Of a stretch of DNA of 64,000 nucleotides, positions 838 through 55,026 are shown in pieces. The position numbers and the translations under genes were made by a program. The notes beneath the pieces are model-generated. The model was not told where the DNA came from, made no database searches, and saw nothing but the letters and a program-made list of their open reading frames with translations. The stretch is from Paragordius varius (lineage: Eukaryota > Animalia > Nematomorpha): contig OZ176057.1 of assembly GCA_964247055.1 (NCBI GenBank), positions 372,001-436,000 on the forward strand, given 5' to 3'. How positions within the stretch are numbered: the first letter of the stretch is position 1; each line of letters begins with the position of its first letter.

Positions 838-1638
838 TTAAATTATCAAAAAGGAAAACTTACGCCAAGGCGGTCTTTCAAAACTTGTTGGTTCATCTAG
901 AGCTGTGTCAGAGGGAGATTTGTCTTGCGAAGATGGCCGCAACCCCCAACCCCCGACTGTGCTTCCCAAAGATAGACCTCGGGCTTCAAAATTAAAGTTT
1001 TCATGTTTGCTAATTTGTCCGTCATTCTTTTCTTCGCTGAACCCTAACTGCGCCGCAGGTTTGGGATTTGGTTGATCAACACTTTTTTCCTTTCGGGAAT
1101 GTTTGTTTTCTTCCTTGACTTTCGCAACTATTTCTCGTTCCGGAACTGGCCGAGTCGGAGTCGGCTGAGAGCGGTTGAAGTTGGAAACAGAACCACTGAA
1201 AGCTCCAAAAGCCCCAAAAGAAGCGAAATTACGAAAGGCCGCTAAAGGTCTATTGAAGCGTGATGTGACATCATCTATTTGCCATCCTATCTTCAATTTT
1301 TTGTTGTGTTTTGAATGTGGAGTTGATGCAGGTTGAACCGGTTTCGTTGGCAGTGGATACGAGTTTATTGTATATTTTTTAATCTGATTTATCCTTTCTA
1401 AAACATTGGAATGAGCATTTCTAGTTTGAGGTGAGTTGCTTATGTTTAGCCGATTGCGACCCTTGGTATTATAATATTTTATGAAAAATGATAATTTAAA
1501 TAATAATTGTTTAAAATTTACTTGAGTGTTCGTATGTATTGCTGTTGAACCAAATATGGGGGAATTTTGGATACCATTGGAAAATTGACCAATAATGAGT
1601 GGTAGGAATGCGATATGGCAAACGATGAATATGTACAT
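838..1638 (-). CDS. Orphan putative secreted protein, 266 aa as an unspliced ORF; the 3' end may be spliced
   Basis: 801-nt ATG-initiated ORF that is clearly more GC-rich than its flanks. The hydrophobic N-terminus MYIFIVCHIAFLPLIIG|QF looks like a signal peptide; the rest is S/P/K/N-rich and low-complexity. AATAAA lies on the minus strand at 785-790. A strong donor (C|GTAAGT) at 863 could replace the last ~8 codons. No family recognised. Confidence 0.7.
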   Translation of the reverse strand: MYIFIVCHIAFLPLIIGQFSNGIQNSPIFGSTAIHTNTQVNFKQLLFKLSFFIKYYNTKGRNRLNISNSPQTRNAHSNVLERINQIKKYTINSYPLPTKPVQPASTPHSKHNKKLKIGWQIDDVTSRFNRPLAAFRNFASFGAFGAFSGSVSNFNRSQPTPTRPVPEREIVAKVKEENKHSRKEKSVDQPNPKPAAQLGFSEEKNDGQISKHENFNFEARGLSLGSTVGGWGLRPSSQDKSPSDTALDEPTSFERPPWRKFSFLII

Positions 1639-5652: not shown

Positions 5653-6229
5653 CACTTCAATTCAAATTGGGGTATCTAAATACCCCAGGCTAAATTTAAA
5701 TTAATATTTTTAAAAAACCACTGAAGGAAATGGTCCCATTTTAAATTTATGCTTCTATCCTGATAAAAATTATATAAATATGACAAAATATCTTGACAAA
5801 ATTTTGTTTTGAACAAAAAGTTCCATCTCAAACTACTTCGACGTTATTTTTATTTTGCAAAATTTTTGCAATATATCGTCTTATTATAATTTTAAGGGTA
5901 AAATTAAAGGTAATTTTTTATTTAAATTACATCTAACTTTGATTGAAAAAGAAAAAGCGGTTTATTTTGTATTATTTTTTAATTTTACCATTTCACACAT
6001 GTCACGTTGACGAAAGTACAACCTTTCGGTTTTGGCTTAAAATAAATATCAAGTATTTTTGAAAAATTTTTTATATATTTGGTTTTATTAATGTTATATA
6101 AGTGCAATATTTTGCCATGGTTTCGATTCCTTCCATACTTTTTAGAGTATTTGATTTTAAACAGGCCTGGGGTATCCAATTACTTCAATTTGAATCGAAG
6201 GACTAAAATGAATGTGTTGTATCCAAGTG
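5653..6229 (+). mobile_element. piggyBac-like MITE, copy 1
   Basis: TTAA at 5649-5652 and 6230-6233; ends CACTT...AAGTG. Subterminal CTTCGATTCAAATTGGGGTA..TACCCCAG inverted repeat is flush at one end and offset ~27 nt at the other, the asymmetry typical of piggyBac. Non-coding, with several further copies in the window. Confidence 0.75.
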
Positions 6230-6570
6230 TTAAAATTGTATAAACGAGAAATCTTAATAAATTTAGTTTTAAAAAGTTTCATATTTTGCAAAATATCGTT
6301 AGAATCTACGATAAAAATAAAACTATAAATTTTTAATCACATCTAACATTGATAGAAACAGACAAAATGTTTTTTCATTATTTTATATTTATCTAATAAT
6401 TACAAATCATGACCAAATTTATACCTTAATTATCCATAAAATAATATAAATTTTTTTTATATTTCCGTCCATCCATGTTATATATGTGTAAACTTTTGTT
6501 ACGCTTTAAATGGTTCCAATTTAAAAATATTTGATTTTGAACACATCGGTCCCCACAAACCCTAAATTAA

Positions 6571-7168
6571 TACTTAGATATAACACATTCATTTCAGTTC
6601 CTCAATTCGAATTTGGGTAGTTAGATACCCTAGCTCTTGGATATAACACACTGATTTTAGTCCTTCGATTCAAATTGGTTGGATACCCCAGGCCTGGTTA
6701 AAAGCAAAAACTCTAAAAAGTATGGAAGGAATCGAAACCTTGGCAAAATTTTATATAACATTAACAAACCAAAATTTATAAAAAATTTTATTCAAAAATA
6801 CTTGATCTTACTTATTTTAAGCTAAAACCGAAAGGTAAAAATTTTGCCAATGTGACATGTGTCAAATGGTAAAATGAAAAAAAAAATACAAAATAAACTG
6901 TTTTTCTATTTCTATTAATGTTAGATGTAATTTAAATAAAAAATAGGCTTTCGTTTCGCAAAAATTTTGCAAAATAAAAATGGCGTCGGAGTAGTTTGAC
7001 ATGGAACTTTTTTTTCAAAACAAAATTTTATTTAGATATTTTGCCATATTTATATAATTTTGATCAAGATAGAAGCATATTTTTAAATTGAGATCGCTTA
7101 GTAGTTTTTTGAATATCCTAAATTCAAATTTAGTCTAGGGTATTTAATACCCCAATTTGAACGAAATG
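6571..7168 (-). mobile_element. piggyBac-like MITE, copy 2, inverted relative to copy 1, with one end duplicated
   Basis: Reverse-complement match to 5653-6229. TTAA at 6567-6570 and 7169-7172. The terminal ~60 nt occur twice (6571-6632 and ~6636-6700). Ends ~65 nt before the SNRNP27 ATG. Confidence 0.75.
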
Positions 7169-7236
7169 TTAAACCTGTACTAAAATGAATATATCCAAAT
7201 GTTAAATTTATTTTGCGTCTAATTAACATATGACCA

Positions 7237-10200
7237 ATGGTATCACCCTACAGTAATGATATATTTATAAAATTAGGAAGAAGGAGTAGATCCAGATCTC
7301 GGGATCGCTATGGAAGAGATCATCATAGAAAAAGTAATTTTAGTTTGATAGTATAGGAAAAAGTCCATTACGAGAACGGAAACGTTCGAGGTATACTTTT
7401 ATACAATATAGATCTAACGAACGAAAATCCACAAAGAAAAAGCAGACAGAACAAATAAATAACACGCATAGTAAAAAAACTGTGGACATACCCATACCAT
7501 GTATTAAGCGTATTTATATATATATATCTTTATTTTTAGTTAAATATTAATATAATAATAACTTATTTTTAGTTAAGAATATTTAATTCCGAATTTTCAA
7601 AATAATTATATATATTATATATGAGTATTAATGTATAAAAAATCAAATGTTTAAAATTTTTCACACATTAAATAGCGAAATTAATGAAGGTTTTAGTCAA
7701 GTCGTTTAGGTGCAATTTGAAACATAAAATTTTGTGGCTCAACCGGTTTTAAAAAATAATTTTTGTTTTTTTATTTATGAACGCTATTTAAATTCAGATC
7801 TCAGGCTTTATTAGCGCTTTGTTTTATAGTTTTTACCATAAATGTCGCTGATATGTTTCCTCATACTTAGTCTTAATTTTGTTCTGCTCTTTCCATAAAG
7901 TCATACAACTTTTAATATTTCTATCATTAATCTTTTATTTTATACAAAAAAACGTAAAACACTATATTGGTTCTCACAATTTCAATCATTCATGACATAT
8001 TTTTTATGTCCGCGATGTCATATTTGGATTTTTCTATATTCCCGAGGTCAATCTTGAGAAAAACTGCTGTTTTGAATGTAATTTTAGTTGAAATACAATT
8101 TTCAAATGTTCTCCTGTATTAGATAGAAAAGCTTTTATTTTATAGTTTTGCAACTTCTGTCTAAAATTGAGGTAGCTATAAAACATTGAAATAAACAGCT
8201 GATTTCAAAATCAAGGTTTGAGTAATGTTGCTTCAATCTTACGACATAAAAGGGGTTTACATAACCCCTGTCATAAATGAAATAATCTAACATGCACGCA
8301 ATACCAAAGTTTTCTGGAAGAAATATGTACACATTTTATCGAATATTTTTTAGATTTATTTGAGTCATGGAAATCAAAATTTGCATACTTTATGAAATAA
8401 TAAAATCTACCCAATTTTTGAATTCTTTAAATTGGAGGATAAAAAATGATGTGTATATATAACAAATTATTTATGGGTTTTAGAAATTGGAATAATGTCA
8501 TACATTAGTGAAATAAACTTCTTTAAAAATATATTTGGAACACACATTTAAAATCCAAAATTTTTTAGATGGTATGCAATTGATTTAATGAATATTTTAG
8601 ATTTATTTGCTGTCAGGGCAATACGATGGTCTATATAATATTTTGATTAAGCGTATTTATGGTTCATTCCTTAAATGTCCGCCAATTTTTACCCTTTATT
8701 TTAAAAACGCATTTTTTATTACATCCTGATTTTCCAAACATGCAAAACGAGAAAACCAGAATTTTGTTGATCAACGTTTTAGAAAAGATTGAAGAATTTA
8801 TATTTCATAGATATCCTATATTGTATTTCCAAAAAAAAACAAATCCAATCCGAGTCAAGAAAATTGGGACAGCTTTATTTAGAAGTGAAAAAAGAATTGG
8901 ATTATGGCATATCACTAAACCAAATTATTAAAATGTATAATAATATCCAGTACAACTTAAAGAAGAAAGTTCAAAATTCTTATAAAACAGGAAATATTGA
9001 TACTCCGAAATTCTTAGATTATGACAAAAAATTATACTCGCTACTAAATACTCTTCTGGTAGCGAAATAAACGCACTACTAAAACAAGGTTACAATTTCG
9101 ATATAATTGGTATTTTTTATTAAATAATGTATAGACTTAAGTGAAAAAATACTAAGTTTGGATGAGCATCAAAAAATAAGCAAAAAAACATGCGATAGTA
9201 CATCAGATTGTATCTTTGAAGAGGATGGAGAAATTTATGCGGCACTTATATTGAGTATTTAAAAATAAATATGTAGATTTTATGAATAATTGCGTCCCGG
9301 ATATTTTATTCCCAGAAATGTAAAATATTCATTATTATCCACATTTGCTTAAATGTTATGATTAAAATACTTTTTCGATTTAAAAAATTTAAAGGGTATT
9401 TCGATGGTTTATTATATTTCTACATGGGTGCAAATTGCACCCACAATACAAAGCATATTTTATTTTTCTGTCCATATATTTACATCTGAAACCATTTCCA
9501 ACTGATTCATCGGAAATTGATCCATTTGTGGCGAAGTCTCCTACAATAATGGCTTACATAGGATATTATTCGTGTCGCATAGCTTCGGGATATCCCAAAT
9601 AATTGCTGACTCCATGTTAAAATCCCAAATCTGCCAAATATCCTAAAAATATTTCAACATACCGTTTGTACATCTAAAAACATTTTAGTTTTGTGGGTCT
9701 AGTCTTAGATATAGTGGAAATATCTCGTTTGTTATAAAATCAACGGTTTCAGGAGGAACCTTGATAATGATTTGTAATCATTTGGGCTTATTGAGCACCT
9801 GGCTATTATCCTTTTTGTTAATAATCTACGCATTAATTGAATAAAAATTACTGAAAATAATTAATAGCACTTGCGAGCGATTGATTCGATAATATGAGAT
9901 TAATTGTGGTATTACTTAAAATTAAAATTTTTAAAATACTTATTATTTGTAAGAGACCTGATTGTTAAAAAATTTGAGAGAATTGTTGCATTGACAGCTT
10001 TTTTGGAATCTCTTTTAGTAGCGAGATTAATTTATTTTCATAACAAAAAACTTAGAGGAATTTGTGTTTGTTATTGAATTTTCTTAATTTCTTCTTTCTG
10101 CTGTAATTGATATTATTATACATTATGATAATTTGGTTTAATGTTATGTCATAATCCAATTCCTTTTTCACTTCTAAATAAAGCTAGTCCCAATTTTCTT

Positions 10201-13200
10201 TAACTCGGATTGGATTTGTTTTCTTTTTCGAATACAATAGAGGGTATCTATGAAATATAAATTCTTCAAACAAACGTTGATCAACAAATCTCTGGCTCTC
10301 TCGTTTTGCATGTTTGGATGTAAATCAGGATGTTATAAAAAATGGCGTTTTCAAAATGAAGGGTGAAAATTGGCGGACATTTAAGGAATGAACCATAAAT
10401 ATTATGCTTATTCAAAATATTATACAGACCATCGCATTGCCCTGGCAGTTAATAAATCTAAAATATTAAGTTAAATCAATATGCCATCTAAAAATATTTA
10501 TATCACCTTTATACGCTATTTTCTCCTTTCAAAGGAGGTAAGCGTGTTATAGTTTTCCATTTGTTTCTTTCTTGAGCTTGTTCGATATCGATACTGAGGA
10601 AATCTAGGTCTTCTTGAATGGTGGATTGCCAGGTTTTTTTAAGGCCTTCCTTTTTTGTTTTTATTATTGGTTGAATAAGACTGTATGAGCTTTATCCAGT
10701 TTGTGTCTTGCGCTCTGTAGATGTGACCAGCCCAACGCAAACGGTATTCCCGGATAGCTGTATTAATTGGTTTAATTTTTAGAGTTTGATAGGGGCAAAA
10801 TTTGGCTTGGAAATTGTATATGTTGGGGTTATGTGCGAAAAGAATGGCGTTTAGGATCTTTTGTTCACTCTTTTGCAGTTTTAGTAGATTTAATTTAGTC
10901 ATAGGCCATGTTTCCGTACCATATAGTATAGCAGGACGTATAGCCGTCATAAAAATTTTTGCCTTTGAGCTGAGTAAAACGTAATTATTATTTATTATTG
11001 TGCGCAGAGTATGATACTTTTTCCAGGCGGCTTTGATTCTATGCGATAAGGCCGATTCTATACCACCACCAGCATCTAAAGTATCGCCTAGGTATGTAAA
11101 TTTGTCGACAATTTCGAATAAAATGGAGGATTCGGGGATTCTATGGTTAATGTATTGGTTGTACTGCACGGGGACAGATAAGGTTTTTATTATCATATAA
11201 ACTTTTTAAAGTGGAGCATTTTTTATGTACCCACTTTAAACATTTGTTACACTTTATTGAGTTTGACTTTACATTTAATGAGCACACGGAGCAGGGCCAT
11301 TTTATTGTCCTGTTTTCATCGCACATTAGTTGGGTCTTAGATGTATTTACCTTCAAACCGAATTTACTTAGGGTATCCTTCCATAAATTTAACTTTTCCA
11401 TTAATTCCGTTGCAGATGTGGCGCATAATATTAAGTCATCAGCGTACAGAACTTCAAAAGGTAAGCCTTTTCGTATGTCTTTTGTGATTTCCTCCATAAT
11501 TAGGATAAATAAAAGGGGGCTCAATATAGAACCTTGGTGTAGGCCGTTTTCAAGTGGGATGGGGTTCGTATCGCCAACGCTTGTGCGGATTACAGTTGAG
11601 GTGTTCTTATATGGTGCTTCTATTATTTGTATCATATTTTCCTCTATACCTTGCCTTCTGAGCGACCAAGAAATCAGGTGTTGCGGGACTGAGTCGAAAA
11701 CCTGTTCCATGTCTACAAACGCATAGTGGGGAGGAAGATTTCTCAGGTGAGCATTTTGTAATTGGCGGATTATAAATATTGCATCTATAATAACCTTGTT
11801 TTTTGAAAATCCAAATTGCATAGAATCTATGCTGCAGTGTTGACGGATTCTGTTGGCTATCAAATTTTCAAAGATTTTAAAACCATGTTCTAAGATGCGT
11901 ATGGGACGAAAGTTGGAAACGTTAAAACGATCACCTCTGCCCTTATAAATTGGGATTGTATAGCTTTTCAGCCAATCAGGGGGTATGATATTATTAAATG
12001 CTATGTTGTTCGCAAGATTTTTGAAATAATCCAAAAATAAATTATGATCTAGGGCTTTGAATACATCATTTGTGATTTCTGATAAACCTGGGCATTTATT
12101 ACTTTTTAAATTCTTTAAACAAAATTTTATAAATGGTTGAAATGAAGAATATGTTGGGTGATGGTTCGTGATTTCCATAGGTATTTTAGGTTTATTAAAA
12201 ATATTAAAAAAGTGGTTATACCATGTGGCTTTTATAACTTGGGCGTCGTGGGTTATAGTATTATCGGGTAATCTAATTGCATTTGTTTCGGCCCTTATAC
12301 TATTATCATATTTTACCCATCTATATGCAGATTGGGAAGATATGGCTTTTTCTAGTTCTTGCCCTTTTTCTTCACCCATTTTTCTCATCGATGCTCTGAT
12401 CGCTTTACGGCAATCTTTCTTTGTTTGGATATTATTTTGCTGTCAGCACTTTTTTCTTTTTTCCATTTTTGGAAAAAGCAGATTTCTTTTTCTTAATTAT
12501 ATCTATCAAGGATATTTGCCACCACCATTTAAATGCTTTTTTATTATCAGATTTCATTCTGCCAACATTCTTCTCTAGTGATTCAATGCAGCTATATTTA
12601 AAGGAATTTCAGAGGTGTTCCGGAGAGGTTGTTTTTAATTTAAGGGAGCTTTCCGTGTCCAGTTTCAATCTATTATTGATATTATTATCGACTAATTTTT
12701 TATATCTAATTTAGGTTTATTTTGTCCAATGGGTGATTGCGTTGATGTAGATTTATATAATTCAGCAATAATGAGTTTGTGCTGTAGTTCTAAAGCGGGG
12801 ATAGATCTAATATTTTTAAATGAGATTTTCTTCTTTTCTTGACATAATTATGTCAATCATCGAGCGATTTGTGCTGGATATATAGGTTAGCAAGTTATTA
12901 TCATTTTTTTTAAAAAAGGTATTAATGATGGATAAATTATTATTACTTGCGAAATCTAATAATATTTTACCATTTTCATTTAAATCATCCATTCCAAAAC
13001 CACCATGTACTGAATGTAAAGATTCTTTACCGAAGTGAGAGTTTAGGTCACCCCCGATAAATATGAAATCAGTGTGTGGAATAGCAGTGACTTTTTCATA
13101 TAAAGCCAACCAGAATAAATCCTTACAGTCTGAATCACAATTGATTTGTGGGGCGTACACGGATAAAATATGATAGATTTTTTTGTTGAGTTGAATTTTT

Positions 13201-16200
13201 AATACTAATAATCTTTCAGATGAGTAATCAATGGATATGATATTGGGTATAATGGAATTTTTGACATAAACTCCGACACCTGATGAACGGCCATTAGATC
13301 CAGACCAGAATAATTTATAATCTAGAATGTTTTTGGAACCAGTGTTCTTCCAGCGAGTTTCTTGAACGCAACATATTTCGATGTTCTTGGAGAAGAGCAA
13401 AGCTGCTATTTCCTGACTCCTTCAGACGAATGATATGATTAGTATGGAGTGTGGGATTCGAACACATCTTATGTTTTGTTATAATGTATTGATATGATAA
13501 GAACAAGCAAAAAGCGAGAAAGAAAAGTGAATTAGCGATAAAATACTGAAATAAATTATGGAGCAACCGTTTTTTACGCCGTGTATGCCCTTACCCGGCA
13601 ATCAGAGAATCTGGAGGAAAGTAAATAAACGTTTAAAGAAAGATGGTGGGTTACAGCTGTTAAAGCGAATGTATCCGCCATCTAAAAATATTTGGATTTT
13701 AAATGTGTCCAAATATAAAGAAGTTAAGTTCACAAAGACGTGTATGCGATTATTCCAATTTCTAAAACCCATAAATAATTTGTTATGTATACATCATTTT
13801 CTATCCTCCAATTTAAAGAATTCAAAAACTGGGTAGATTTTATTATTTCGCTATGTATGCAAATATTTCGATTTTCATGACTCATATATATCTAAAAAAT
13901 GTAGTTCGATAATATATGTACATATTTCTTCCAGAAAACTTTGGATTTTGCATGCATGTTTTAATACTTATCCATTTTTAACTGGGGTTATGTAAACCCC
14001 TTTTAGTGTCGTAAAATTGAAGCAACATTACTCAAACCTATATATTATTTGTTAAATATACTTTAGTTTATATCCTCCAATTTACAGAATTCAAAAATTC
14101 GCAATATTTTTAAAGCCATTTTGAAATTTTAATAAGTCTACCTGGAGCAGACTTATGATGAATGTATGATATTTATTCAAAAATGTAAGCATAAGGACGT
14201 AAGTAATACTTACCCGAACATGGGTCATAATATCAAGTTTTCTAAATAAATTTTTTTATATTTCAGGCATTAATGTTATATCAGTGCAAACTTTTGCAAT
14301 GGTTTCAATTTGTTTCATATTTTTCGAAATATTTGATTGTAAACAAGCCTGGAGTCCCCAATGAACATTCGAATCAGATGAAATGACTTTGTTGTATCCA
14401 AATGTCAAAAAAACTTTAAATAGCTTAAAAAGCTTTAAATAAAGCATAGATATAAATTTGCCTAATATCTAAAATATTTTAAGATATTTCAATTTTACAT
14501 CGATCTGGGAAATAAAACTCCCCAAATGTCATTAAATGTTACAACTGTTCTTTATATATATATATATATATATATTCATAGCTTTTTGTTTTACATTAGA
14601 AAGTTTTTAACAGTTGAATTTTTATGAATGTTTAGTTAAAATTAAGTTAACTCATGAATACAGTTTTCATAAAGAGAGCCATACTATTTCACCCATAATA
14701 TTTTCCACCTAACCTTTAAGATTTATAACAATATACCATTTACACTTCAAGAGTGTCCTTGAACAATTCAAGTTGGTCCTTGAACAGTTCAAGTTGGTCC
14801 TTAAAATTTATTAATTTTGATTTAACCATAATTTTTGCATTTATTTTTTTATTTAATTATTTATTAACCTAATTTTCTTTATTTATTATATACTTATTCA
14901 TTTAAAAATAAATTTTTTTATTGAAAAACCACTTTTTTGTTTAAAACTATTTTTTTTCAATTGAACAAAATTATTGACTTTTAAATGTTTTTAATGAAAA
15001 ATTTTAATTAATAACCCAGAAAACTAATATAATTTTTCATTTCATGTTAAAATCTTATAAATATCCAAATTTATTTTAAGAATTTAATAAAGATATACGG
15101 TTTTTCAAAGATTAAAAGTTGATATCGATTTAAAATTTATGTTAAATAATAGAAAATAGGTTAAAAACAATAAAATAGACGAATTATTTTCGATGTGATT
15201 GATAAAAGTTAAAAACAAAGCAAAAAAGTTAAAGGACCAACTTGAATTATTCAAGGACCAACTTGAACTGTTCAAGGACCAACTTGAACTGTTCAAGGAC
15301 CAATTTGAATTGTTCAAGGACCAACTTGAATGTTCAAGGACCAACTTGAATTGTTCAAGGCTCTTGAAGTGTAAATGGTATATATACTCTATTGAGTATT
15401 GCCAGAAAGTTATATTTATTGCCAAATAGCATATAGGAAGTATTTTTGGCTTATGGCTATTTTCACTTTGTACTATTATTAGCCAATAATAATTCTCTTT
15501 GCTGCATATGCTATTTGGTAATAATTTACTATTACTGTAATTAGGTGTTACCATATAAAAAATATATAATTATAAAAAAATGACCTTGTTTATATAGCAA
15601 TAAAATGTTTGTATCTTTTAGTCTTTAATAATATATTTTATCAATTTAGTGGATAGTAAAACTCTGGCCGAACAAGAAGAAATGCGAAAATTAATGGGAT
15701 TTTCCGATTTCAACACCACCAAAAATAAACATGTTCTGGGTAACATAGAAGTCCCTGACGCTGTAAACATACTGAAAAAGAGAAAATACAGGTGCGTCAT
15801 TTTCCATAAAGTTAAAACTTTTTTCATATTAAACAGCAATACTTTTTTATATCTTGATTTTTTTCAACATAATCTATTGTTTTGGGTCAACGATTAATAG
15901 ATATAAACTGGTAACATACACTAATTCTTACATTTGACAACAATTTTTAAAAAAATACCTGCCTCTATTTACGGTTTTCTTTTTAATTTTATTTTAAACT
16001 CTTATAGTTAAAACCTTGCATATCAAAAGGCAGAATAGCATGCCTTTTGGTGAATCTTGATTTTTCTATATTTTTTTATCATATCCTGTATATATGTAAT
16101 ACATACAAATTAGCATTACTTTATTTTTTAATATCTTAAACGATGAATTATATTAGGAAAAATAAGGTTTGTTTTTTAACAAGATATTCGTTTTTAATTT

Positions 16201-18855
16201 TCATCATTTGTTTTTATTAATTTTACCGTAAATTTGACATTTTCAGCGGTAACTATATATACCCAATTTACACTTCAAGAGTCACCTTGAGCACTTCAAG
16301 TTGGTCCTTTGATTTTTTTGTTTTGTTTTTTACTTTTATCCATCAAATCGTGTATCCTTCATTTACTTTATCATTTTTAACCTTTTTTCTATTATTTAAC
16401 ATAAATTTGAAATCAATATCAAGACAAACTGTATGTATTATTTTTTAAAATGGATTATAAGATATTAACCCCTAATTAAAAAATTATAAGTTTTGTGGGT
16501 TATTATTTACAACTTTTCATTAAACATTTAAAAGTTAATAATTTTGTTAAATTGGAAAAAATAGTTTGATACAAAAAAAGTGGTTTTTGAACAAATATTT
16601 TTATTTTTATATGAATAAATATTTAACACTGGGCAACAAATTTTTTTGCCACTCGAGTTTTTTGCATTTTCTTATATTTAGTATCATTTTAACGGTAAAT
16701 CTGAGATAAAAATAATACTTGAGAGAAGAATTTTGTATAATTTGATTTCTTTGATTATGCGCCCTCATTATAAAAATTTTATTAAAAAATGTTTTTCTTT
16801 GAAAATATACAAGTAATTCTCATTTGTAATATATCATTCGAAAGAGTAATCTATAAAATGTATACTAATATGTATTACATTGACAGCTAATATTGGACAC
16901 AAAGAGCGTTCTTTAATTATTATATTTTTAAAACTAATGGATGAAAATAGCTCAAACTTTGTTTATATGGTGATGAATGTTCAAAAAAGATAACAAAAGA
17001 AAGTTTTTTTTATTAAAACATTTTTTTATTGCTTTTATGTTACTCAAAACAGCCATTTTTAAGTTTTTTGATTTTGACAATTACCATCTCATCAATATTA
17101 AGCTAATAATTTCGAAATTTTAAAGATTAAAACAAAGTTTAAGGTATTTTTGATCTTTTATAGCCGTAATCCAAATAACTTTTACATCCGATTGATTTAA
17201 ATGACTTACCACCATTTAAAAGATGCAATTTTTTGCGCTCTTTCGAATGATATAAAATACATGGCTTCATATTTGAAACTTTTAATTTTCGAAATTTCGA
17301 GTTTAATGCTAAATCGGGGCCAAAAATTATCGATAAACTCTAATATAAAAAATTCTTGCAAGCTAGACCAATTCTTTTCAGATATACTAATTATGTTGAA
17401 TGAAATAAATTTTAAATTTACAAGAATGGCATTTAAATAAGTTAAAAGTTGTTGTCTAGTGTAATAAATAAAGAAAATTTATAAATTATGCTGCGAAACA
17501 TGGCAAATAAGTAAAACACAGGAAAATATGCTGGATAATATGGAACAAAGATTGATAAATACATTTGAGCGAACAATCTCTCATGATAAACAAATCCTAA
17601 CAATCTCAAAATATATTCAAATCCGTAGACTTGGCTATTACGGTCACATTCAAAGATTAGATAACGATAATTGGATTAAAAATATAACAAACTTTAAGCC
17701 AAACAAACAAAACAGAGTTGGTCCTCCATCTAGCAATAACATGGGACAAAAACATTACCCAAGACCAACAGGCCAAAAACATAAAAGCCGGGGACTGGTT
17801 AAACAAAAATTCCTTCAATGCAATGATTAAACACCTAAATATCAAAAATTAGTTTTAAAAATAAAAAAATACATGCAAAAATTATGGTTAAAATAAATTT
17901 AAATAAGGACCAATTTGAAGTGTTCAAGGACCAACTTGAAATGTTCAAGGACCAACTTGAAATGTTCAAGGACCCATTTGAAGTGTTCAAGGACACTCTT
18001 GAAGTCATACAGCAAATTAAACGTTTTACCATATTATTAGAATTTACTTGATCTTTTAGCAATTAGTTCCGATTTTATAATTGTGCTCTGAGTTCCCAAA
18101 ACTATAATTTTCGTCTAAAGAAAACTTTTATGATTTAAAATATTATATTACTGAACCGACGTCATCAATTATTATTATTACTTGTAATGTGAGAAAAAAA
18201 TGCCATTTTTGAATTTTTTGTAAATCACAAGTCAGTAAAGACAGTTTTTCGTATTTTATAATTATTTTTATTAACTATTGACACTACATATGCTTAAAAC
18301 TTTTTTAAATCCATCTATTTCTAAAATTAATTCGTAGCTTTCATTGTCTTGAATAAGTTTTATTTTGTTCTTTTTTGGGTCACAGCTTGCTGAAGGCGTG
18401 GATTGGACAATTAAAATTAAATTACATTTTTTGTTTTTGAATAAACGGCTATTAATTTAAAGTGAAAATCGTTTATAGTATAATGTGTTTTACTACTTAA
18501 ACTTTGATTTTAATAAAATTATATATACGGTTTGATTTGATCAATTTTCACATATACAATTATGTCATATCTTTATATCTAAATTAAAAATATTTTTAAG
18601 ACAAATTTTGGGAAACATATATACTTTATTTAGGTCAAAAAATTTACAAATTTACGTTTGTCGCCTTTTAAATTTGTTTTTAGTGGTTTTAAATGCTAAT
18701 TTATAACCGCCTTATAGTTTTTAGCAGAAAATAACCAATTATAACTTTTATATATACCTTTTTGATTTTATTATCTTTAATATTTGTTTTTATCTTGTAG
18801 ACAATACATGAATCGGAAAGGAGGATTCAATAAGCCATTAGATTTTATTGCCTAA
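7237..18855 (+). CDS. SNRNP27: U4/U6.U5 tri-snRNP 27 kDa protein, 6 exons, 120 aa
   Basis: Exons 7237-7252, 7277-7333, 7357-7390, 7412-7470, 15650-15791, 18801-18855; all introns GT-AG with matching phases; total 363 nt. Protein MVSPYRRRSRSRSRDRYGRDHHRKRKSPLRERKRSRS...EQEEMRKLMGFSDFNTTKNKHV...[23 protein letters not shown]: RS-rich N-terminus plus the diagnostic SNRNP27 C-terminus ([22 protein letters not shown] in known orthologues). Confidence 0.95.
8659..9070 (+). pseudogene. Frameshifted Myb/SANT/MADF-like ORF in the left arm, mirrored at ~10060-10390 (-)
   Basis: Joined frames give EEFIFHRYPILY...KLGQLYLEVKKELDYGISLNQIIKMYNNIQYNLKKK, which fits a trihelix MADF/Myb pattern by eye. Harbinger elements are known to carry a Myb-like second ORF. 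Inferred, not HMM-confirmed. Confidence 0.4.
9270..9765 (-). pseudogene. Decayed Harbinger/HARBI1-type (DDE_Tnp_4) transposase fragment
   Basis: Across frameshifts and stops: VPPETVDFI..., FLGYLA..., FGISRSYATRIISYV...WINF, LCIVGAI-CTHVEI, NHNI*ANVDNNEYFTFLGIKYPGRNYS. These match the Harbinger motifs FGIS.ST..RII, GAIDCTH, N.Q...D...F and PG..HD in the correct order. Confidence 0.75.
10500..13676 (-). mobile_element. Full-length RTE-clade non-LTR retrotransposon (APE + RT + PHD-type finger), frameshifted
   Basis: Exact 17-bp TSD GCCATCTAAAAATATTT at 10483-10499 and 13677-13693. APE in ORF 12816-13400 (CCVQETRW, SVYAPQ, GGDLNSH). RT in ORF 11147-12388 (GLHQGSILSPLLF, LYADD). C-terminus in ORF 10639-11196 (KFTYLGD, LYGTETW, RLRWAGH, GRP). 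Confidence 0.95.
14732..15382. mobile_element. Foldback-type MITE, subfamily 1 (21-bp subterminal arrays)
   Basis: TIR TATACCATTTACACTTCAAGAG / CTCTTGAAGTGTAAATGGTATA. Unit TTGAACTGTTCAAGGACCAAC occurs 2-3 times in the left arm and 6 times in the right arm. Confidence 0.85.
16627..17461 (+). mobile_element. Chapaev3-like (CMC) MITE, internally deleted copy
   Basis: TIR CACTGGGCAACAAATTT / AAAGTTGTTGTCTAGTG with TAA on both sides (16624-16626, 17462-17464). Near-identical to 26745-27850 except for a ~240-270 nt internal deletion. Confidence 0.85.
17480..17835 (+). mobile_element. 5'-truncated RTE LINE, 3' fragment
   Basis: ORF 17528-17830 contains RRLGYYGHIQRLDNDNWIKNITNFKPNKQNRVGPP, matching the RLRWAGHIYRAQDTNWIK...KGRP tail of the LINE at 10500-13676. 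Confidence 0.75.
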
Positions 18856-24449: not shown

Positions 24450-27400
24450 TATATGATTTCACTCTTTCCAGCGATCATATCCGTAAACTATTTCGCCATA
24501 GAACCCTGTCTTGGGCGTTCACGCGTTTTAAGTTCAGTTTTGCCATGCCACTCTTAATTGTATCAATCCATCACGTTTTAGGTTGCCCTTTTCCCCTCTT
24601 ACCTTTTTTATCTCTTCTTTCTACATGACCAAACCATCTTAGATTTACCATCACTTTTGCGTTACCGGTTTGATTTCCGTACTTTTTCTTATGTAGACAT
24701 TCCTCACCTTGTCATTCCTCGTTACACCGCACATCAATCTGAGCATTCTCATTTAAGTAACCTCAAAGTGCATCTCTTCTGATTTCTTTATTGCCCATGT
24801 CTGTGCGTTGTACATCATTGTTGTCTGTACAGCAGCACTGTAAATCTTACCCATGACTTTTAAATCAATATTTTTATCTCACCAAACATTTGAAATCTTT
24901 TTATAGTTTGCCCAACTATTTGGAATTCTTAGATTTATAACATGAGTTAAAGAACCATCTGCTAAAATCGCTCCTAAATATTTGCATTCCTTCTAACCTT
25001 TTAATACCCCGTTTTTTCCACCAAAATTTATTGATTCCGTTTTCTCTTTATTAACTTTTAATCCGCATCGTCGTGACACATTAATCCATTTCCCCAACAT
25101 TTCTTTTAATTCATGTAACTCGTCGGACAGCACTATTAGGTCGTCTGCACAAAGAAAATAACCAGCCACCGTGTTGCCCTACTTCTTTTGAAATTTCGTC
25201 CTTGCATATTATAATAGTAACGGCTGATTGGTGGCCCCTGATAGACCCCTTGGCTTATTTCAATAGGATCTGATACTCCGTGGTGCTTTTTAATTTTGGT
25301 ATGGTGTGAATCGTACATGCTTTTTAGAATTTTTATGTAACTTTTAAGGACGTTTTTCCGTCTTAAGCTCCACCATATTGTGCTCCGTGGTAGTCTGTCA
25401 AAAACCTTTTCAATATCGATTAAAATACCATGCAACTCTTTTTTCATTTCTATATGCTTCTCGATTATTCTTACTGCCTGAATCGGATCAATGGTAAACT
25501 TTCCTGGAATAAAACCAAATTGATTATCCTCTATACTAAACATTTATATTCGTTTCTCTAGTGTTTTCTCAAATAACTTCATTGTAGGCGACATCAATCT
25601 TATCCCTCTGTAATTTTTACAATCATTAATATCTTCTTTACCCTTGAAAATTGGAACATTAAAGCTCTCCTTCCATTAGGTTGGTATCATACCTGTAGAA
25701 ACTACATTATTAAAAATATCCGCCAAAAATTAAAGACCTTTCTCTGACATTATTTTCCAACAGTTTGTCAATATCCTCTGGACCTGCAGCCTTATTTATA
25801 GACATCTCTTCTAAACCAGCCTGGACTTTTTTTGTTTCCATAGCGCAGATATATAATCTGGTGCTTCGCGTAAAGTTTTACTGACGCCCAATTCAAGGTC
25901 CTGAAAATATTCTTTCCACCTCTTAAAAATTTTCGCTTGACGAGTAATTTGCCGTTTTTGTCTTTAATAGCCGTCGCGTAAGAGGACCAGTTCAGCTTTA
26001 TTCTGTGTTTTTGTCGAGCAATTTTAAAAACTTTTTTAGACCTTGCTTATTTTCTAACTCCTTGTAATATTATGCCGTTTTTTCTTTTTAATCTTACAAG
26101 CCTAAAAAGTTCCTTATAAATCCTTTTGTATTTTTCCCCGTATTCTGCATGTGGTTAACCACATTTAAAAGCTTTGCTTTTCTCCGCTATTTTAGAATTA
26201 TTTTTTTGTTTTACAGCCATGCTTTTCTATAAACCTGATTTCTACCACCTTTCATTCCGGACAACTTAACTCCCGCTAATTTATTTTTCCACCTAAGACC
26301 AAACATCTGGATCGCTGTTCCTCTAGTATTCCTACCGTTTCTACAAATTTTACTTAACTATTTCTTAAGCTTACGTTTTTGTATTTATTGGTATATCTGT
26401 CATATCACATATTTAAATTTGTTATGTACTAATCTGCAGAGGTGTGACTTTGCAGACCACAGCAAACTTTAAAGACTTTTGCGGTATTGATTTGTGTCAT
26501 CTTTCCACTTTTGTGAATAATTAAATATGGCTATGCCTTTTAGTAAAAATGATATTTGTTAAAGCTAAGTTATAAGATTGAGCAAATCTTAATAAACTAG
26601 CCCCTACTCCTTCACCCCGTAGCCTTTTCCGCCATGCCAAGGTTCACAACCTGTCCTATTTTGTGCCACATGCCTATTGAACCATAAAATACGATTTCTC
26701 TGTCTTTCGTTAATAAAGTCATTTCTGCGTGTAACAAATCATAACACTGGACAACAAATTTTTCTGCCACTCGAGTTTTTTGAGTTTTCTGATATTTAAT
26801 ATCATTTTAACAGTAAATCTGAAATAAAAAATATAACTCGTTGAAAGAATTTTGTAGAATTTGATTTTTTTGATTATGCGCCCTCTTTATCAAAATTTTA
26901 CTAAAAAATATTTTTCTTTGAAAATATACAAGTAATGCTCATTTGTAATATATCATTCGAAAGAGTAATAAAAACTCTATAAAATGTATACTAATATGTA
27001 TTACATCGACAGTTAATATTGGACACAAAGAGCGACAAACGCGCGAAGCGAAAGCATTTTTTTTAATTATTATATTTTTAAAACTAATGGATGAAAATAG
27101 CTCAAACTGTGTTTAGATGGTGATGAATGTCCAAAAAAAATAACACAAGAAAGTTTTTTTAATTAAAACATTTTTTTATTGCTTTTATATCACTCAAAAC
27201 AACCATTTTTAAGTTTTTTGTTTTTTAAAAATTACCATCTCATCCATATTAATTTATTTTCTTTATAAGGCTGATAATTTCGAAATTTTAAAGATAAAAA
27301 CAAGGTTTAATGTATTTTTGATCTTTTATAGCCATTATGTAATAAATTTACAGTTATAACTATGCATTTTAATATCCACTAGGTAAAATATTTATGATAA

Positions 27401-37895: not shown

Positions 37896-38448
37896 ATACT
37901 TCACTCATTTTAGTCCTTTGATTCAAATTGGGGTAGTTAGATACCCCAGGCCTGTTTAAAATCAAATAGTTTAAAAAGTATGGAAGCAATCGAAACCATG
38001 GCAAGATTTTGCACTTATATAACATTAATAAACCGAAATATATAAAAAATTTTTATTTAAAAATACTTGATATTACTTATTTTGAGCTAAAACTTAAAGA
38101 TAAAAATTTAGTCAACGTGACATGTGTCAAATTGTAAAATTAAAAAATAATACAAAATAAACCGCTTTTTCTATTTCTATCAATGTTAGATGTAATTTAT
38201 ATAAAAAAATAAGCTTTAGTTTTACATGAAGACGATATTTTGCAAAGTTTTTGTAAAATAAAAATGGCGTCGAAGTAGTTTGAGGTGGAACTTTTTTTTT
38301 CAAAACAAAATTTTATCAAGATATTTTGGCATATTTATATAATATTTATCAGATAGAAGCATAAATTTAAATTGGCACCGTTTCCTTCTGTTGTTTTTTA
38401 TTTAAATTTAGTCTGGGGTATTTAGATACCCCAGTTTGGATCGAAGTG
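37896..38448 (-). mobile_element. piggyBac-like MITE, copy 3
   Basis: Same family as 5653-6229. TTAA at 37892-37895 and 38449-38452; one end slightly truncated. Confidence 0.78.
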
Positions 38449-38593
38449 TTAATACATTAAATATAGTATAATTAAATAATATATTTATTTTTATGAGAAG
38501 GAGTATCCTAACCAATTATAATATCATTGCACTACACACAACAAATTTCGACTTTTTTTAACTGCCATATGTGGAAATTTAAATTTTAATTAA

Positions 38594-39154
38594 CACTTCG
38601 ATTCAAATTGGGGCATCTAAATACCCCAGACTAAATTTAAATAAAAAACAACAGAAGGAAACGGTGCCAATTTAAATTTATGCTTCTATCTGATAAATAT
38701 TATATAAATATGCCAAAACATCTTGATAAAATTTTGTTTTGAAAAAAAAAGTTCCACCTCAAATTACTTCGACGCCATTTTTATTTTACAAAAATTTTGC
38801 TAAATATCGTCTTTATTTAATTTTAAGGGTAAAACTAAATCTATTTTTTTATATACATTACATCTAACATTGATAGAAATAGAAAAAGCGGTTTAGTTTG
38901 TATAATTTTTCAATTTTTCAATTTGACACATGTCACATTGACGAAATTTTTACCTTTCGGCTTTAGCTTAAAATAATAATATCAAGTATTTTTGAATAAA
39001 ATTTTTTATATATTTCGGTTTATTATAGTGCAAAATTTTGCCATGATTTTGATTGCATAGATACTTTTTAAAGTAGTTGATTTTAAACAGGCTTGGGGTA
39101 TCCAACTACCCCAATTTGAATCGAAGGACAAAATGAGTGTGTTGTATCCAAGTG
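38594..39154 (+). mobile_element. piggyBac-like MITE, copy 4, head-to-head with copy 3
   Basis: TTAA|CACTTCGATTCAAATT...GTATCCAAGTG|TTAA, with TTAA at 38590-38593 and 39155-39158. Confidence 0.82.
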
Positions 39155-40339
39155 TTAAGCATACTAATTCAAATCCAAATTTGAAAATATTTTTGACCTA
39201 GCTTGAATAGATTTTGGAAAATTTATATTTTGTTAATTTTAAAATAATCGAAAAATCGGACGCTTGATCAAATATATTATAAGATAGAAAAAAATTGAGA
39301 ATATGAAACTATCATTAAATAAAGCATACAAAACTGTATCTTTTACATATAAATATATTATATAGGCTTTTATTAAAAATCGTAAATTGAGAGATGTCAT
39401 ATTATTTGCTTTTTGCGAGCTCATCACAAACGTTTGTAAATAAGTTTCAGTGTAAAAGCATCAGCTTTTAGAATATATATATTTTGTCCAATTTTAATTT
39501 ATGTTAAATTTATGAACCAATTTAAGTACATCAGTGGCGAAAAACCCAATCATTTATGCAAAAATCTATGTTACTTGTGGATTTTTATATTTTTTAAATT
39601 TGAACGAAATGGACATAGTAAAATTAACATTTATATATAGGCCGAGGTAAATGATCATAAAAAATGGATTAACATAGATTACAGCTTGTTGAGTATGGTA
39701 TCCTGTTCATGTAAAGAAATTTTTAATTCACATAAATCTGAAAACTCAAACTTATTTATATGTTTGAATAAATTGATGGATATCTATAGATTATATTAAA
39801 TTAATAAACTTAACCACAAATTAGTCGCGGCTAGAATTATTAATGTAAAAAATTTGCGACGAAAAATCTTTTGGGATTTGAAAATTAATGCATTAAAAAA
39901 AATATATCATCATGGATTGTTGATTTATTCTAATACTAGTTTGATAATTCATGCATAGTTTAACGCTACTTTTTGGTTTTATGATTTATTTTTATCATAG
40001 ATTGTTACAAAGAATTATATTAATGCTAAGATTTTTATCATAGATTGTACACAGCAATTTATTCATGCTAAATAAATCTATTTAATGAAGAATAAATACA
40101 ATATGAATACATTTATTTATTGTAAATACATTTACATAGCTTATAAATACATATACATAGTATATAAATATATAAAAATTATGTATGATTCCAAATAAAA
40201 TTGGATATCATATTAATAGTATACTACTGATGGCCTTTTGTCGATTTGTGGGACCAGTAATAGAACCTTCTTTTTTGCAGACAACAAAGAAAGTAAATCC
40301 TTGGCAGCTTTTTTGGTAATTTTGTGCTTTTTAATGAAA

Positions 40340-41160
40340 TAATGGGCTTGTGTAGTCGCGCTGCAAGAGCCTTTTTGTAATCAAAAAGACAAAATTAGCA
40401 GTCTGATTTAAATTTATATGATTTTTCGGTTCAAAGTCAAATCATTGGCACGCTAAAAGGCATTGCTTTATTGTTATTTTTCCAATCAATTAAATTTATA
40501 CGGCATGAATCGCATATTTTTTTCGGAGCCCAAGGTTTGGCAGCATCTATTGTATCAAAACATTTCGAAAAAAGTTGTTCTATTGTGTTTCCTAAATTTC
40601 TTAATTTTTTTAAAAAATCCATCGTCCGCAAACATACAAAATTTGTTCGGATCATTTTTAGAATTGCGTTCTATATTATAAAGATAAATACCTGCTTGCG
40701 GGATCTCGCTCGTGTCAACGATTTGATTCAAAAACTTAAACATAAATGCACTAGGAAAGTATATTTTGGATATATTTTGATAAAATTTAAAAAACTACCT
40801 CTAATGAAAATTACATTATAAAAGCGACAAAAACTTTTTATAAAGAAAAAATATTTCTTCATTCTTAAAGAGCAATGTTAATTGAAATTGTTATTAATCT
40901 TAATTTTTTAGCAATCATTAGAGTTTTAGATTTTCGCTCACAAAAAAACGTCAATTTTTGCTATTATAAATTCGAAATTTATGACTATATTGATTAAGAT
41001 CATTTTTATAATCTATTACGCTCTATCGATTGATATATTATTTTATTTTTTGAAAAATCCTTTCAAGTAGCCCATTTTTTTTTTAATTTTTGGTATAGGT
41101 ATACTATTAGCTAACAGAAACTAAAATAATATCATTTGGCAGAAAAATTTGTTGTCTAGT
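40340..41160 (-). mobile_element. Chapaev3-type DNA transposon relic: left TIR plus N-terminal transposase fragment
   Basis: TIR-like CTAGACAACAAATTTTTCTGCCA at 41159-41137 (minus strand). Transposase motifs across ORFs 40555-40743 and 40437-40655 and beyond: NDPNKFC(YVCG), KPWAPKKICDSC, W...MPFSVPMI, EPKNH, DC*FC. These match the Chapaev3 N-terminal Zn-binding region as recalled. Right end not found. Confidence 0.72.
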
Positions 41161-44100
41161 AGTGTTGGGAAATAATTGGTGCATTTAATATATCTATAAT
41201 TTCTTCATCGCTAATTAAATTTTCTTCAAGTGATTTCAAGCAGAGTGCGCCACAGCGAATTCCTAAAACAAAGAAAAAGTTTTATTTAAAACAAACGAAA
41301 ACTTAAAAATAAACAAACTTAAAATAATACAGTTTTTGTGTATATATTAAATGTTACTTATGTTTTTATTATAAATTATTAAAGAATTGCAAGTATGAAT
41401 TTACATTAAAAATTAAAATTACACGGACAAAACGCAAAAATATAAAGGCAAATATTTTTTTCAAAAAAAACCATACTGAAACTTATTTCTTCTTATATAA
41501 ATTATTTACTTTCCACTTAAAAATATAAAATTGATTGTGTTACCAATATACATCTCTATATACTTTGCAATTTCAACAATGCATTATAATTAAAAAAATG
41601 ACATTTAAAAGGTATGGCTATATTTTAGAAAAAATATTTGTACTCATATTTTTACGTGTCCGTATATAATTTTAATTTTTACTGTAAAACATACATTTTT
41701 ACATCTTTTTGAACTATAAATTTGGTGTATATTACACCTCTACTCCTTTGCAAACGAAAATGTAAAATAGTAGGTCTCTTAGTTTTAGTATTATCAAATA
41801 ATCTTTACAGTATTTTACCAGATTGAATGGCTCCAGATATGGTTCCTTTCTCATAATTTGCCGTTTCAGTCCCTCCAAAAAATATCATATTTTTGGTGAC
41901 ATTATTGTTAAGTTTATCATTACAATTTTGCTCTATATTAAGGCTATTAAACAATTGTAAATTTATGAGATTTTGAGTTTTTCCAATACAAGGAACCGAA
42001 ATAGGACCACCAAAACACAAAGGCTCCATTCTCCAATCCTATAAGATTATAAAAAAAAAACCGTTTAAATTTAAAAGTTAATATTTATTAAAGACGTGAA
42101 TTACGTTTTTTTGTTAAGTCTGGCAAAAAATATGATATACTATATAAAAATGGTAAAAATTTGGGTTAGAAATATCTCAACTATACAACATATTTAGTAT
42201 TCCAGACTGATTAAAATTGCCTAGTAGAGTGGTTTAAAACAAATGACTTTATATTTAATGATGAAAATTTTATAAGAATCATTCAAATCGATTGTAAAAA
42301 AATATAAAGACAAATATTTTTTTTCAAATAACCGCTCTACATTAAAACTATGAATTTTTAATATACATTGTCTTTTTTGCAAAGTTAATAAGGATGTATA
42401 TTGGTAACACAATCAACTATTTATTTTACGATGTAATATAATAATAATTTATATAGAAAATATTGTGTTCAAAAAATGGTTGCCTTTTGATCTAAATATA
42501 TATTTATTTATGTTTTTACTATTAATTTCATTTACTGTATCTATATATATATATATAAATGGTCAAACATGGGGTTTAATATCACTAAACCCTACAAATT
42601 TAACATACCTAACTACAAAATAATATTTTAATACGGTGGTTTATTAAACAATATTATAGTTATTATAATAAAAGATTTGAATCAAATCGTTTGAGTAATT
42701 GCAAAAAATAACAAAAAAACCTTTTCAAAATAATTGAGGAAAGATTTAGCCTCTGTAGTTTTCCAGACTGCATTAAGGTACGATGTTATGGCTACAATAC
42801 GTTCTTCTTGCTATATATTAAAGAAATCAATCAATTTTAATTATTTTAGCTTAAAATTTGAAAGGAAATATATGAAATTATAAAGTTATGATGATCTTAA
42901 TCAATAGGAAAAAATTAATTTTGAATTCAAGGACTTTCTCTATAATAAAAAAATTAATATATTTTAGTATTAAACCGGTTTTTGTATCCAATAATCATAA
43001 TTATCAGCACCGATGAACCCACTTAAAACGCCAAGGACCACACTTGATTTAACTAAAAGTAGGTAAAAATTTAAATTATATGACAAAACTACATATATTT
43101 GCTGAAAAAACAATCATATTTTTACGAGAATTATATTAAGATTATAAATAATTTATGTAAGAAAAGGTTAGTAAAGTGTAGTTTTTTGATAAAAATTTCT
43201 CTTTATAATTTAAATTTTTATGCCATTCTTAAAGCAAACGCAATAATTTTTCAAATGTTAAATATGTTGCGTTTTTTGAAAAAATGCTTTTGACTGCAAA
43301 AATGTTAACTATACCATTTACAGTTCAAATTCACCCTTGAACAATTCAAATTCACCCTCGAACAATTCAAATTCACCCTTGAACAATTCAAATTCACCTT
43401 TGAACAATTCAAATTCACCCTAAAAATAATTTATGTATTTTCAAACTAATATAACTCATTATTAATATGAAATATATGTTTTGTATAGTTTATTATTTTT
43501 TTCAGTATTAGTTTAATTTAAAACAAAATTTTTATTTTTTAAAAATATATATGGTAATTTTTAGTATTAAAAACATATATTTTATATGAGGGTGAATTTG
43601 AATTGTTCGAGGGTGAATTTGAATTGTTCAAGGGTGAATTTGAATTGTTTAAGGGTGAATTTGAATTGTTTAAGGGTGAAATTGAATTGTAAATGGTATA
43701 TACTTTTATGTTTTCAGTTAAAGAAAATTAAAATTACCTGTAAAATTTCTATCGTGACAACTAATGATTGAAGTATCAAAGCAACAATCGAAAGGAGCCA
43801 CACAATAAGAACTTCCCTGCATTTGGTATCGGAAGCAATTATTAACAGAGTCGAAATAGGAATACCTTTATATAATAAAGTATAAAAATGAAATATATTA
43901 TATACAAAACGTAAAAACATATAGACAAATATTTTTATCTAGACAGCTATACTTTTTAACTTTGATTATATTATTAAATTTGTAAAATAAAATGTTTTAC
44001 CAATTTTTTAATTCATACTTTGCTTATTAAACCAATGAGTTATATTTAAAAAGCGTTTATAAATAGGTTTTAAAAAATATTTGTTTCAGTCTTTACGTCT

Positions 44101-46513: not shown

Positions 46514-46557
<44 letters not shown>

Positions 46558-54018: not shown

Positions 54019-54454
54019 TCCATATATATCGGTACAGTAATACATTGGTACAGTCGAAAAAACACATTTTCCATACAAAATGTGCAAAGAAAAGCGGAAT
54101 TTATGATTTTATCATTTTATTTTTTACAGATTTTAGTTATAACATTTTTTAAACAGATTCTTTGAATAAGAAACATATGTGTTTCTATGGATTAGCTCCT
54201 AATCTTTTACACCTTACATGGATACATAACATTAATTTTAGTCCTTCGATTCAAATTGGGTAGTTGAATACCCCAAGAATAAAATTCTTTGAAATATGCA
54301 CGGCAAAAGTTTAATTGAAACACTTTGTATAATATGAAATTATCTAAATTCCGGACTATATTTATATTGATATTTAAAAAAACAATTAAAAAAACGGATG
54401 CTTCCATTCTGAAGAATTATATTAGCCGAAATATCTGAAAATTTACTTTTTTAA

Positions 54455-55022
54455 CACTTCGATTCAAATTAAGGTATCTAAATAACCCAGACTAAAAAGT
54501 TAGAATTTTTAGAAAACTACTGAAGGAAACGGTCCCAATTCAAATTTATGCTTCTATCCTGATAAAAAATATATAAATATGCCAAAATATGTTGATAAAA
54601 TTTTGTTTTGCAAAAAAAGTTTCACCTCAAACTATTCGACGCCATTTTTATTTTACAAAATTTTTCAAAATATCGTTTTCATTTAATTTTAAGGGTAAAA
54701 AAAAGCTAAATTTTAATATAAATTACATCTAACATAGATAGAAATAGAAAAAGCGGTTTATTTTGTAATATTTTTTAATTTTACCATTTGACACATGTCA
54801 CGTTGACGAAATTTTTTCCTTTCGGTTCTAGCTAAAAATATTTAATATTTTTGAATTAAATTTTTTATATATTAGGTTTATTAATGTTATATAAGTGCAA
54901 GTTTTTGCCATGGTTTTGAATCCTTCTATACTTTTAGAGTATTTGATTTTAAACAGGCCTGGGGTATCCAACTACCCCAATTTGAATCGAAGGATTAAAA
55001 TTAGTGTATTGTATCCCAAGTG
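54455..55022 (+). mobile_element. piggyBac-like MITE, copy 5
   Basis: TTAA at 54451-54454 and 55023-55026. An inverted end fragment lies at ~54215-54276. Confidence 0.8.
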
Positions 55023-55026
55023 TTAA

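Follow-up and report, generated by a model that had tools for sequence, protein, structure and literature searches.

Known systems with ultra-short introns

In a 2026 survey covering 51 animal genomes, introns shorter than 30 nt were confined to myxobolid myxozoans and Dicyema (PMC13644364). According to the same survey, the short class forms the genome median in these animals (22–27 nt) and has long RNA reads behind it. Myxobolus genomes can be large and rich in repeats: one of 206 Mb has a mean intron length of 507 bp (PMC8855578), and one of 185 Mb consists of 68% repeats (10.1101/2024.02.09.579586). Among parasitic flatworms, Opisthorchis felineus has microintrons clustered at the 5' ends of genes, with a mode of 37 nt, beside introns of 3 kb (PMC6530080), and the monogenean Gyrodactylus salaris has a microintron mode of 32 nt (PMC4040987). 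In these flatworms the adjacent 5' microintrons occur in genes with kilobase introns, and intron definition was proposed as the reason for this arrangement. The genome paper of Schistosoma mansoni reportedly gives 5' introns down to 26 bp. Outside the animals, introns of 20–35 nt in Paramecium and of 18–21 nt in the Bigelowiella nucleomorph are cited in PMC2222250, and introns of 15–16 nt in Stentor in PMC13644364.

The window analysed here, a stretch of DNA of 64,000 nt with approximately 26% GC and zero N gaps, includes a SNRNP27 gene in which three predicted introns of 21–24 nt precede two of several kilobases. Compared with the systems of Hadjez et al. 2026 (PMC13644364) and Aruga et al. 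2007 (PMC2222250), it resembles myxobolids and Dicyema in having GT-AG introns below 30 nt at conserved positions, with a GTa signal at the 5' end and no pyrimidine tract; in both cases the short introns are adjacent and the animals parasitic. Myxobolids also combine introns below 30 nt with large, repeat-rich genomes. The window differs from them in belonging to another phylum and to a full-bodied ecdysozoan worm, and its short class is predicted from DNA and located only at the 5' end of SNRNP27. With the parasitic flatworms it shares adjacent 5' microintrons in a gene with kilobase introns, although the lengths are 21–24 nt in the window against modes of 37 and 32 nt. The introns of ciliates and nucleomorphs are similar in size and in their AT-rich GT-AG form, but these organisms are non-animals in which nearly all introns are tiny and have no multi-kilobase neighbours.

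The size class and the layout are thus each already known, and the mixture of tiny and huge introns in one gene is not new. The initial annotation had regarded the locus as the strongest candidate in the window for an undescribed system, which was not upheld, as flukes and myxobolids already show similar combinations and the range of intron lengths is wider in the orthologous gene of Gordionus. What is new, on the gene model presented below, is a floor of 21–24 nt in an ecdysozoan whose sister lineage has approximately 40 nt. A literature search of incomplete coverage found no description, for hairworms, of intron lengths or of the layout with short introns at the 5' end.

Gene identity and exon model

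Database searches were run with single exons as queries. Exon 5 (15650–15791, plus strand, as are all parts of the gene; 142 nt) contains the Pfam domain SNRNP27 (PF08648; E 9e-13, 48.5 bits with a cut-off of 23.1), and matched also the human U4/U6.U5-27K protein in a PDB search. The full HMMER scan of exon 5 against 1.84 billion proteins gave as its top match the SNRNP27 protein of Gordionus (P0001; 66% identity, E 1e-11), the next true match having an E value of 5e-6. In view of this match a myxozoan or mesozoan source, considered at first, was rejected. The window protein and the Gordionus protein also clustered together in the tree, with modest support (88/69), and in both analyses the nearest relative was thus a hairworm protein. 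The word-index protein search with exon 5 produced no match, and the Gordionus protein used as a query retrieved neither a named hairworm nor any near-identical protein derived from transcripts. The assembly concerned, Gordionus sp. m RMFG-2023, is taken here to be that of the Montseny hairworm G. montsenyensis. For G. montsenyensis a genome with 27% GC and 64% repeats has been described (10.1101/2023.06.26.546503).

When the five introns were removed using the intron 4 donor at 7471, the joined model formed an open frame of 120 codons from the ATG at 7237 to the stop ending at 18855. Both the N-terminal RS-rich region and the conserved end KRKYRQYMN...LDF of SNRNP27 are present. The C-terminal motif is intact, including the Met aligned with a Met of human 27K; one Met of the 27K protein has been tied to 5' splice-site choice (PMC10581693). 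It is most likely that a horsehair worm (Nematomorpha) is the source of this intact SNRNP27 gene and that the five introns of the gene are old and of U2 type.

Exon 1 (7237–7252; 16 nt coding) begins the protein with MVSPY, and the Gordionus protein begins with MVSPH. The RS-rich exon 2 (7277–7333) is 57 nt long in both species, and exon 3 (7357–7390) is 34 nt long versus 37 nt in Gordionus. Exon 6 (18801–18855; 55 nt coding) ends with LDFIA and the stop codon.

Exon 4 (7412–7509) is probably 98 nt long; an end at 7500 is about equal and an end at 7470 scores worse. The initial annotation had placed intron 4 at 7471–15649. Its GT-AG ends and its acceptor hold, but the donor at 7471 is less likely than those at 7510 and 7501. 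The reading frame of exon 4 continues beyond 7470, and the GC content is exon-like (36%) through 7471–7509 and 11% beyond 7509. With the donor at 7510 the intron is 8140 nt and the protein 133 aa long (score 330), with that at 7501 the lengths are 8149 nt and 130 aa (score 332), and the donor at 7471 scores 306. The two better donors each yield a Leu before DSKT, matching Gordionus. Exon 4 alone gave no local alignment with Gordionus, and the choice between 7501 and 7510 is therefore uncertain; the alignment scores suggest that the donor is probably one of these two and not 7471. The 30-nt GT-AG segment 7510–7539 was rejected as a fourth tiny intron because an in-frame stop comes right after it. 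This segment is opened by the probable donor of intron 4; its end is a possible cryptic or recursive acceptor, and a short local duplication is present at approximately 7530–7577.

The three 5' introns

The three short introns, all of GT-AG form, are located at 7253–7276 (intron 1; 24 nt, phase 1), 7334–7356 (intron 2; 23 nt, phase 1) and 7391–7411 (intron 3; 21 nt, phase 2). The GT...AG segments of 24, 23, 21, 8179 and 3009 nt on which the initial annotation was based were all verified in the sequence. Its claim that the 23-nt intron has to be removed for the sake of the frame was likewise confirmed, as retention of intron 2 leads to an early stop after 31 residues. Introns 1 and 3 could be left in with neither a frameshift nor a stop, hence the frame alone does not require their removal; it is orthology rather than the frame that supports their prediction.

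All open models of the 5' region of the gene (n = 8,734) were enumerated and scored by alignment to Gordionus. The two best of the 8,734 models, with scores of 332 and 330, contain exactly the three tiny introns. The best model without any intron shorter than 31 nt had a score of 296, with AT-rich inserts left in the RS region. The GC content of the intron cores was 11% versus 39% in exons 1–4 (p = 4e-5), and for GT and AG to occur jointly at two specified positions by chance the probability was 0.002–0.004 per intron. Each intron is reduced to GTA at its 5' end, a core rich in A and T, and a final TAG. In each of them an A stands seven bases from the 3' end; with DNA so rich in A and T this is not noteworthy. 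Of the features of ultra-short (<30 nt) U2-type introns, GT...AG ends, length, and shared position and phase were found, and removal of the tiny introns restores the best homologous frame, although this is strictly required for intron 2 only. The three segments are very probably genuine ultra-short spliceosomal introns.

Two other readings of single introns were tried and rejected. A U12-type intron 3 is contradicted by its donor, which differs from GTATCCTT at +5, by the lack of a TCCTTAAC-like branch box, and by the Gordionus intron at the same site, which is U2-like. An acceptor giving an 18-nt intron 2 runs directly into a stop.

With lengths divisible by three and no stop, introns 1 and 3 could also be decayed introns that now mostly stay in the mRNA and encode 8 and 7 extra residues, intron 2 then being cut as 32 or 41 nt; open models without any intron shorter than 31 nt do exist. 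These models were, however, 34–42 points lower and put hydrophobic peptides encoded by AT-rich DNA into the RS domain. All three segments also lie at orthologous sites, with their GT and AG ends exactly preserved and an intron-like composition. This speaks against retention, which we consider very unlikely.

Intron positions in Gordionus and other orthologues

Five orthologous proteins were mapped exactly onto their own loci to obtain intron lengths and phases. The introns of Gordionus SNRNP27 (locus L001) are 41, 39, 44, 40, 40,846 and 1,389 nt long in phases 1, 1, 2, 1, 0 and 2, and those of the window 24, 23, 21, approximately 8,140 and 3,009 nt in phases 1, 1, 2, 1, (absent) and 2. Introns 2–5 are located on codons aligned with those of Gordionus, and intron 1 to within one Arg of an Arg run. 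Intron 3 and the 44-nt intron of Gordionus interrupt the same codon after KRS. The two genes share five intron sites with their phases, a succession from short introns at the 5' end to long ones filled with repeats at the 3' end, and a similar GC content (27% in Gordionus). They differ in that Gordionus has short introns of 39–44 nt, an intron 4 of 40 nt and a retained intron of 40.8 kb.

Also gar, scorpion, starfish and annelid have a phase-1 first intron after the first RS block. The scorpion and starfish genes open with phases 1, 1, 2, and their first introns are 289–2,119 nt long. Because the RS region is of low complexity, exact orthology with the introns outside the hairworms is loose, but deep orthology of the first introns with those of scorpion and starfish is likely. 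Gordionus (1389 nt), gar, scorpion and starfish all share the phase-2 site of intron 5. The phase-0 intron after (S/T)TK or TSK, present in Gordionus (40.8 kb; L001:10525-51370), gar, scorpion and starfish, is absent from the window, which has lost this ancient intron. The intron 4 site of the hairworms (window 7501–7510, L001:10411) is offset downstream, by approximately three codons, from the phase-1 intron that gar, scorpion and starfish have, possibly owing to intron sliding or local indels.

The initial annotation had stressed that tiny introns share a pre-mRNA with transposon-filled introns about 400 times longer. This agrees with the computed range of approximately 390-fold, and the Gordionus introns, from 39 nt to 40,846 nt, have a range of approximately 1,050-fold.

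Long introns and their transposable elements

Intron 4 (7510–15649; approximately 8.14 kb, phase 1) corresponds to a Gordionus intron of 40 nt at this site. Of its length in the window, 66% is repeats and LINE frames, rising to 83% when the whole nested block is included. This block (8214–14039) consists of a fold-back element interrupted by a LINE. The arms of the fold-back element (8214–8572 with 13678–14039, and 8558–9048 with 10014–10499) are inverted and have an identity of 84–85%. The broken non-LTR retrotransposon within (10639–13400, minus strand, i.e. antisense to SNRNP27) includes an endonuclease (12819–13400), a reverse transcriptase (11147–12385) and a C-terminal frame (10642–11196). 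Further downstream in intron 4 a MITE-like element (14731–15383) has 21-bp tandem repeats in its inverted ends, with relatives at 16253–16626, 17845–18005, 43310–43702 and 47879–48367. Intron 5 (15792–18800; 3009 nt, phase 2, in an Arg codon after KRKY) is made up of repeats to approximately 56%, among them the 3' fragment of a LINE at 17528–17830. Both long introns have longer T-rich 3' ends. The Rfam scan found no snoRNA or snRNA hidden in the long introns, and no snRNA gene in the window.

Similarity between the repeats of the window locus and the Gordionus locus was detected neither with blastn nor with tblastx, which fits the expectation of separate transposon loading. The 40.8-kb intron of Gordionus is repeat-rich, and transposase-like frames were observed inside it. 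Just downstream of the Gordionus gene (L001:54927-57446, minus strand) there are two frames of 405 and 378 codons resembling the pol of LTR retrotransposons. As intron 4 is long in the window and the 40.8-kb intron in Gordionus, growth of long introns has taken place at different sites in each lineage.

An assembly join in the long introns, named by the initial annotation itself as something that could overturn its claim, was judged improbable. In favour of such a join, these introns are rich in repeats. However, recognisable transposon or repeat DNA makes up 56–83% of them, and this, together with the conserved exon order and the junction phases that match Gordionus on both sides of each long intron, argues against a join. 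Further, the reading frame is intact and there are no gaps, and independent contigs cross the edge between exon 4 and intron 4 without differences, so that a join or a pseudogene is extremely improbable.

Public reads over the locus

In the run search with exon 5, four runs under one species label contained the exon, none of them recorded as RNA, and five runs guessed to be RNA under the same label contained almost none of its words. Two RNA-labelled runs inspected over 7170–7640 gave no contig on the gene. Two public runs (X1 and X5) carry unspliced DNA across most of 7170–7620, and one of them may be the source sample. Run X5 had zero differences from the window, and run X1 had three substitutions, all of them exonic (n = 3): two that change amino acids in the RS-rich exon 2 (7287 and 7295) and a silent one at 7430. 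We infer the excision of the introns in RNA from the sequence comparisons above.

Other features of the window

A flavin amine-oxidase-like gene was found on the minus strand at 41156–54018, with seven stop-free exons from 54018 to 47282 (363 codons) and apparent further exons near 46490, 43050, 42810, 42040 and 41260. Its first intron is 42 nt long, in frame and stop-free, and introns 2–6 are 892–1497 nt. As also this gene has its short intron first, the order is not peculiar to a spliceosome gene. That the host of the tiny introns is one looks incidental, given the intact conserved C-terminal motif of SNRNP27. The layout known from flatworms, with minimal introns at the 5' end, adjacent where there are several, and long ones downstream, was found in SNRNP27, in its Gordionus orthologue and in the amine-oxidase gene, a small sample.

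A frame of 266 codons without a Pfam match (838–1638, minus strand) may hold an in-frame AT-rich intron of approximately 60 nt near 1470–1530. A MITE-like family with inverted ends has many copies in the window (5660–6230, 6600–7190, 37900–39160 and 54240–55030), one of which has its end within 100 nt upstream of the SNRNP27 start codon, where it may overlap the promoter. Two more decayed LINE copies are located at 24500–26700 (minus strand; Pfam reverse-transcriptase match at 25139–25543) and 56280–59010 (plus strand).

Splicing and history of the introns

The reading preferred here, with a probability of roughly three in four, is that the gene has old U2-type introns of which the 5' trio has been cut to 21–24 nt and the downstream pair filled with transposons. 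Introns 1–3 are too short for a pyrimidine tract, and pairing of the two splice sites across each intron by the spliceosome is therefore most likely. Intron definition by the ordinary major spliceosome would thus account for their removal, the branch point presumably being an adenosine a few bases before the AG, in analogy to myxobolids, dicyemids and ciliates. The transposon-filled long introns with their longer T-rich 3' ends suggest that exon definition most likely serves to recognise exons 5 and 6. Intron and exon definition on one transcript is normal in animals, and on present evidence the occurrence of tiny and transposon-filled introns together calls for no new machinery.

The halving of the minimum at the same three sites, compared with Gordionus, could also point to a changed spliceosome, with altered U1 or U2 snRNA or lost or shortened proteins, as a requirement for introns of 21–24 nt. 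This appears unlikely. The window contains no snRNA gene that would bear on it, the C-terminus of SNRNP27 is conserved, and myxozoans with introns of 22–27 nt keep a canonical U2 branch-point region and U2AF (PMC13644364). More speculative, and quite unlikely, is a mode of splicing coupled to position, in which introns of 21–24 nt would be removable only near the cap or promoter, for example with the help of the cap-binding complex or of altered U1 or U2 parts, and exon definition would take over further downstream. If such a mode were true, the approximately 40-nt introns at these sites in Gordionus would make that species a natural control in the search for what halved the minimum.

As regards history, the layout with short 5' and long 3' introns probably predates the split of the two hairworm lineages, as it is present also in Gordionus, with a wider range, and it would then be ancestral to both. 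Two steps would be specific to the window lineage: a lowering of the intron minimum from approximately 40 to 21–24 nt, and growth of intron 4 by transposon insertion from a short intron to 8 kb. The latter intron, with its nested transposons and its 40 nt in Gordionus, has very probably been inflated in the window lineage. The direction of change is deduced by parsimony with one sister taxon and from the transposons being still recognisable.

The initial annotation had gone further and suggested a once miniaturised genome re-inflated by transposons. Locally the growth of intron 4 fits this, but a history of the whole genome was left unsupported by one gene and one sister taxon. Were all introns once approximately 22 nt long and hit at random, the tiny ones would be those left unhit, and since small introns are small targets, insertion alone might give two size classes. 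Such a history would be consistent with the tiny introns being genuine. Intron 4, 40 nt in Gordionus and 8.1 kb in the window with 66–83% transposon or repeat, would agree with such a course, and the shorter protein (130–133 aa versus 160 aa in Gordionus) and the one lost ancient intron fit compaction. Against this, the layout recurs in Gordionus over a larger range of lengths, and introns 4 and 5 contain no recognisable remnant of 21–24 nt. Random insertion also predicts no order, but three tiny introns precede two long ones in the window, four short ones two long ones in Gordionus, and the amine-oxidase gene is arranged likewise, although the numbers are small. Miniaturisation of the whole genome is for these reasons doubtful, and shortening of the 5' trio together with local transposon growth downstream is preferred.

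Implications

The locus contributes an exact comparison of five introns with Gordionus, including one of 40 nt there versus 8 kb here. As the same introns are 39–44 nt long in Gordionus and 21–24 nt in the window, a comparison of these two relatives offers a way to ask what sets the minimum length of an intron. Gene finders with a floor of 30–40 nt would mis-model the starts of such genes. If RNA confirms the junctions, hairworms would be the third independent animal lineage with introns shorter than 30 nt and, as far as found, the first among ecdysozoans.
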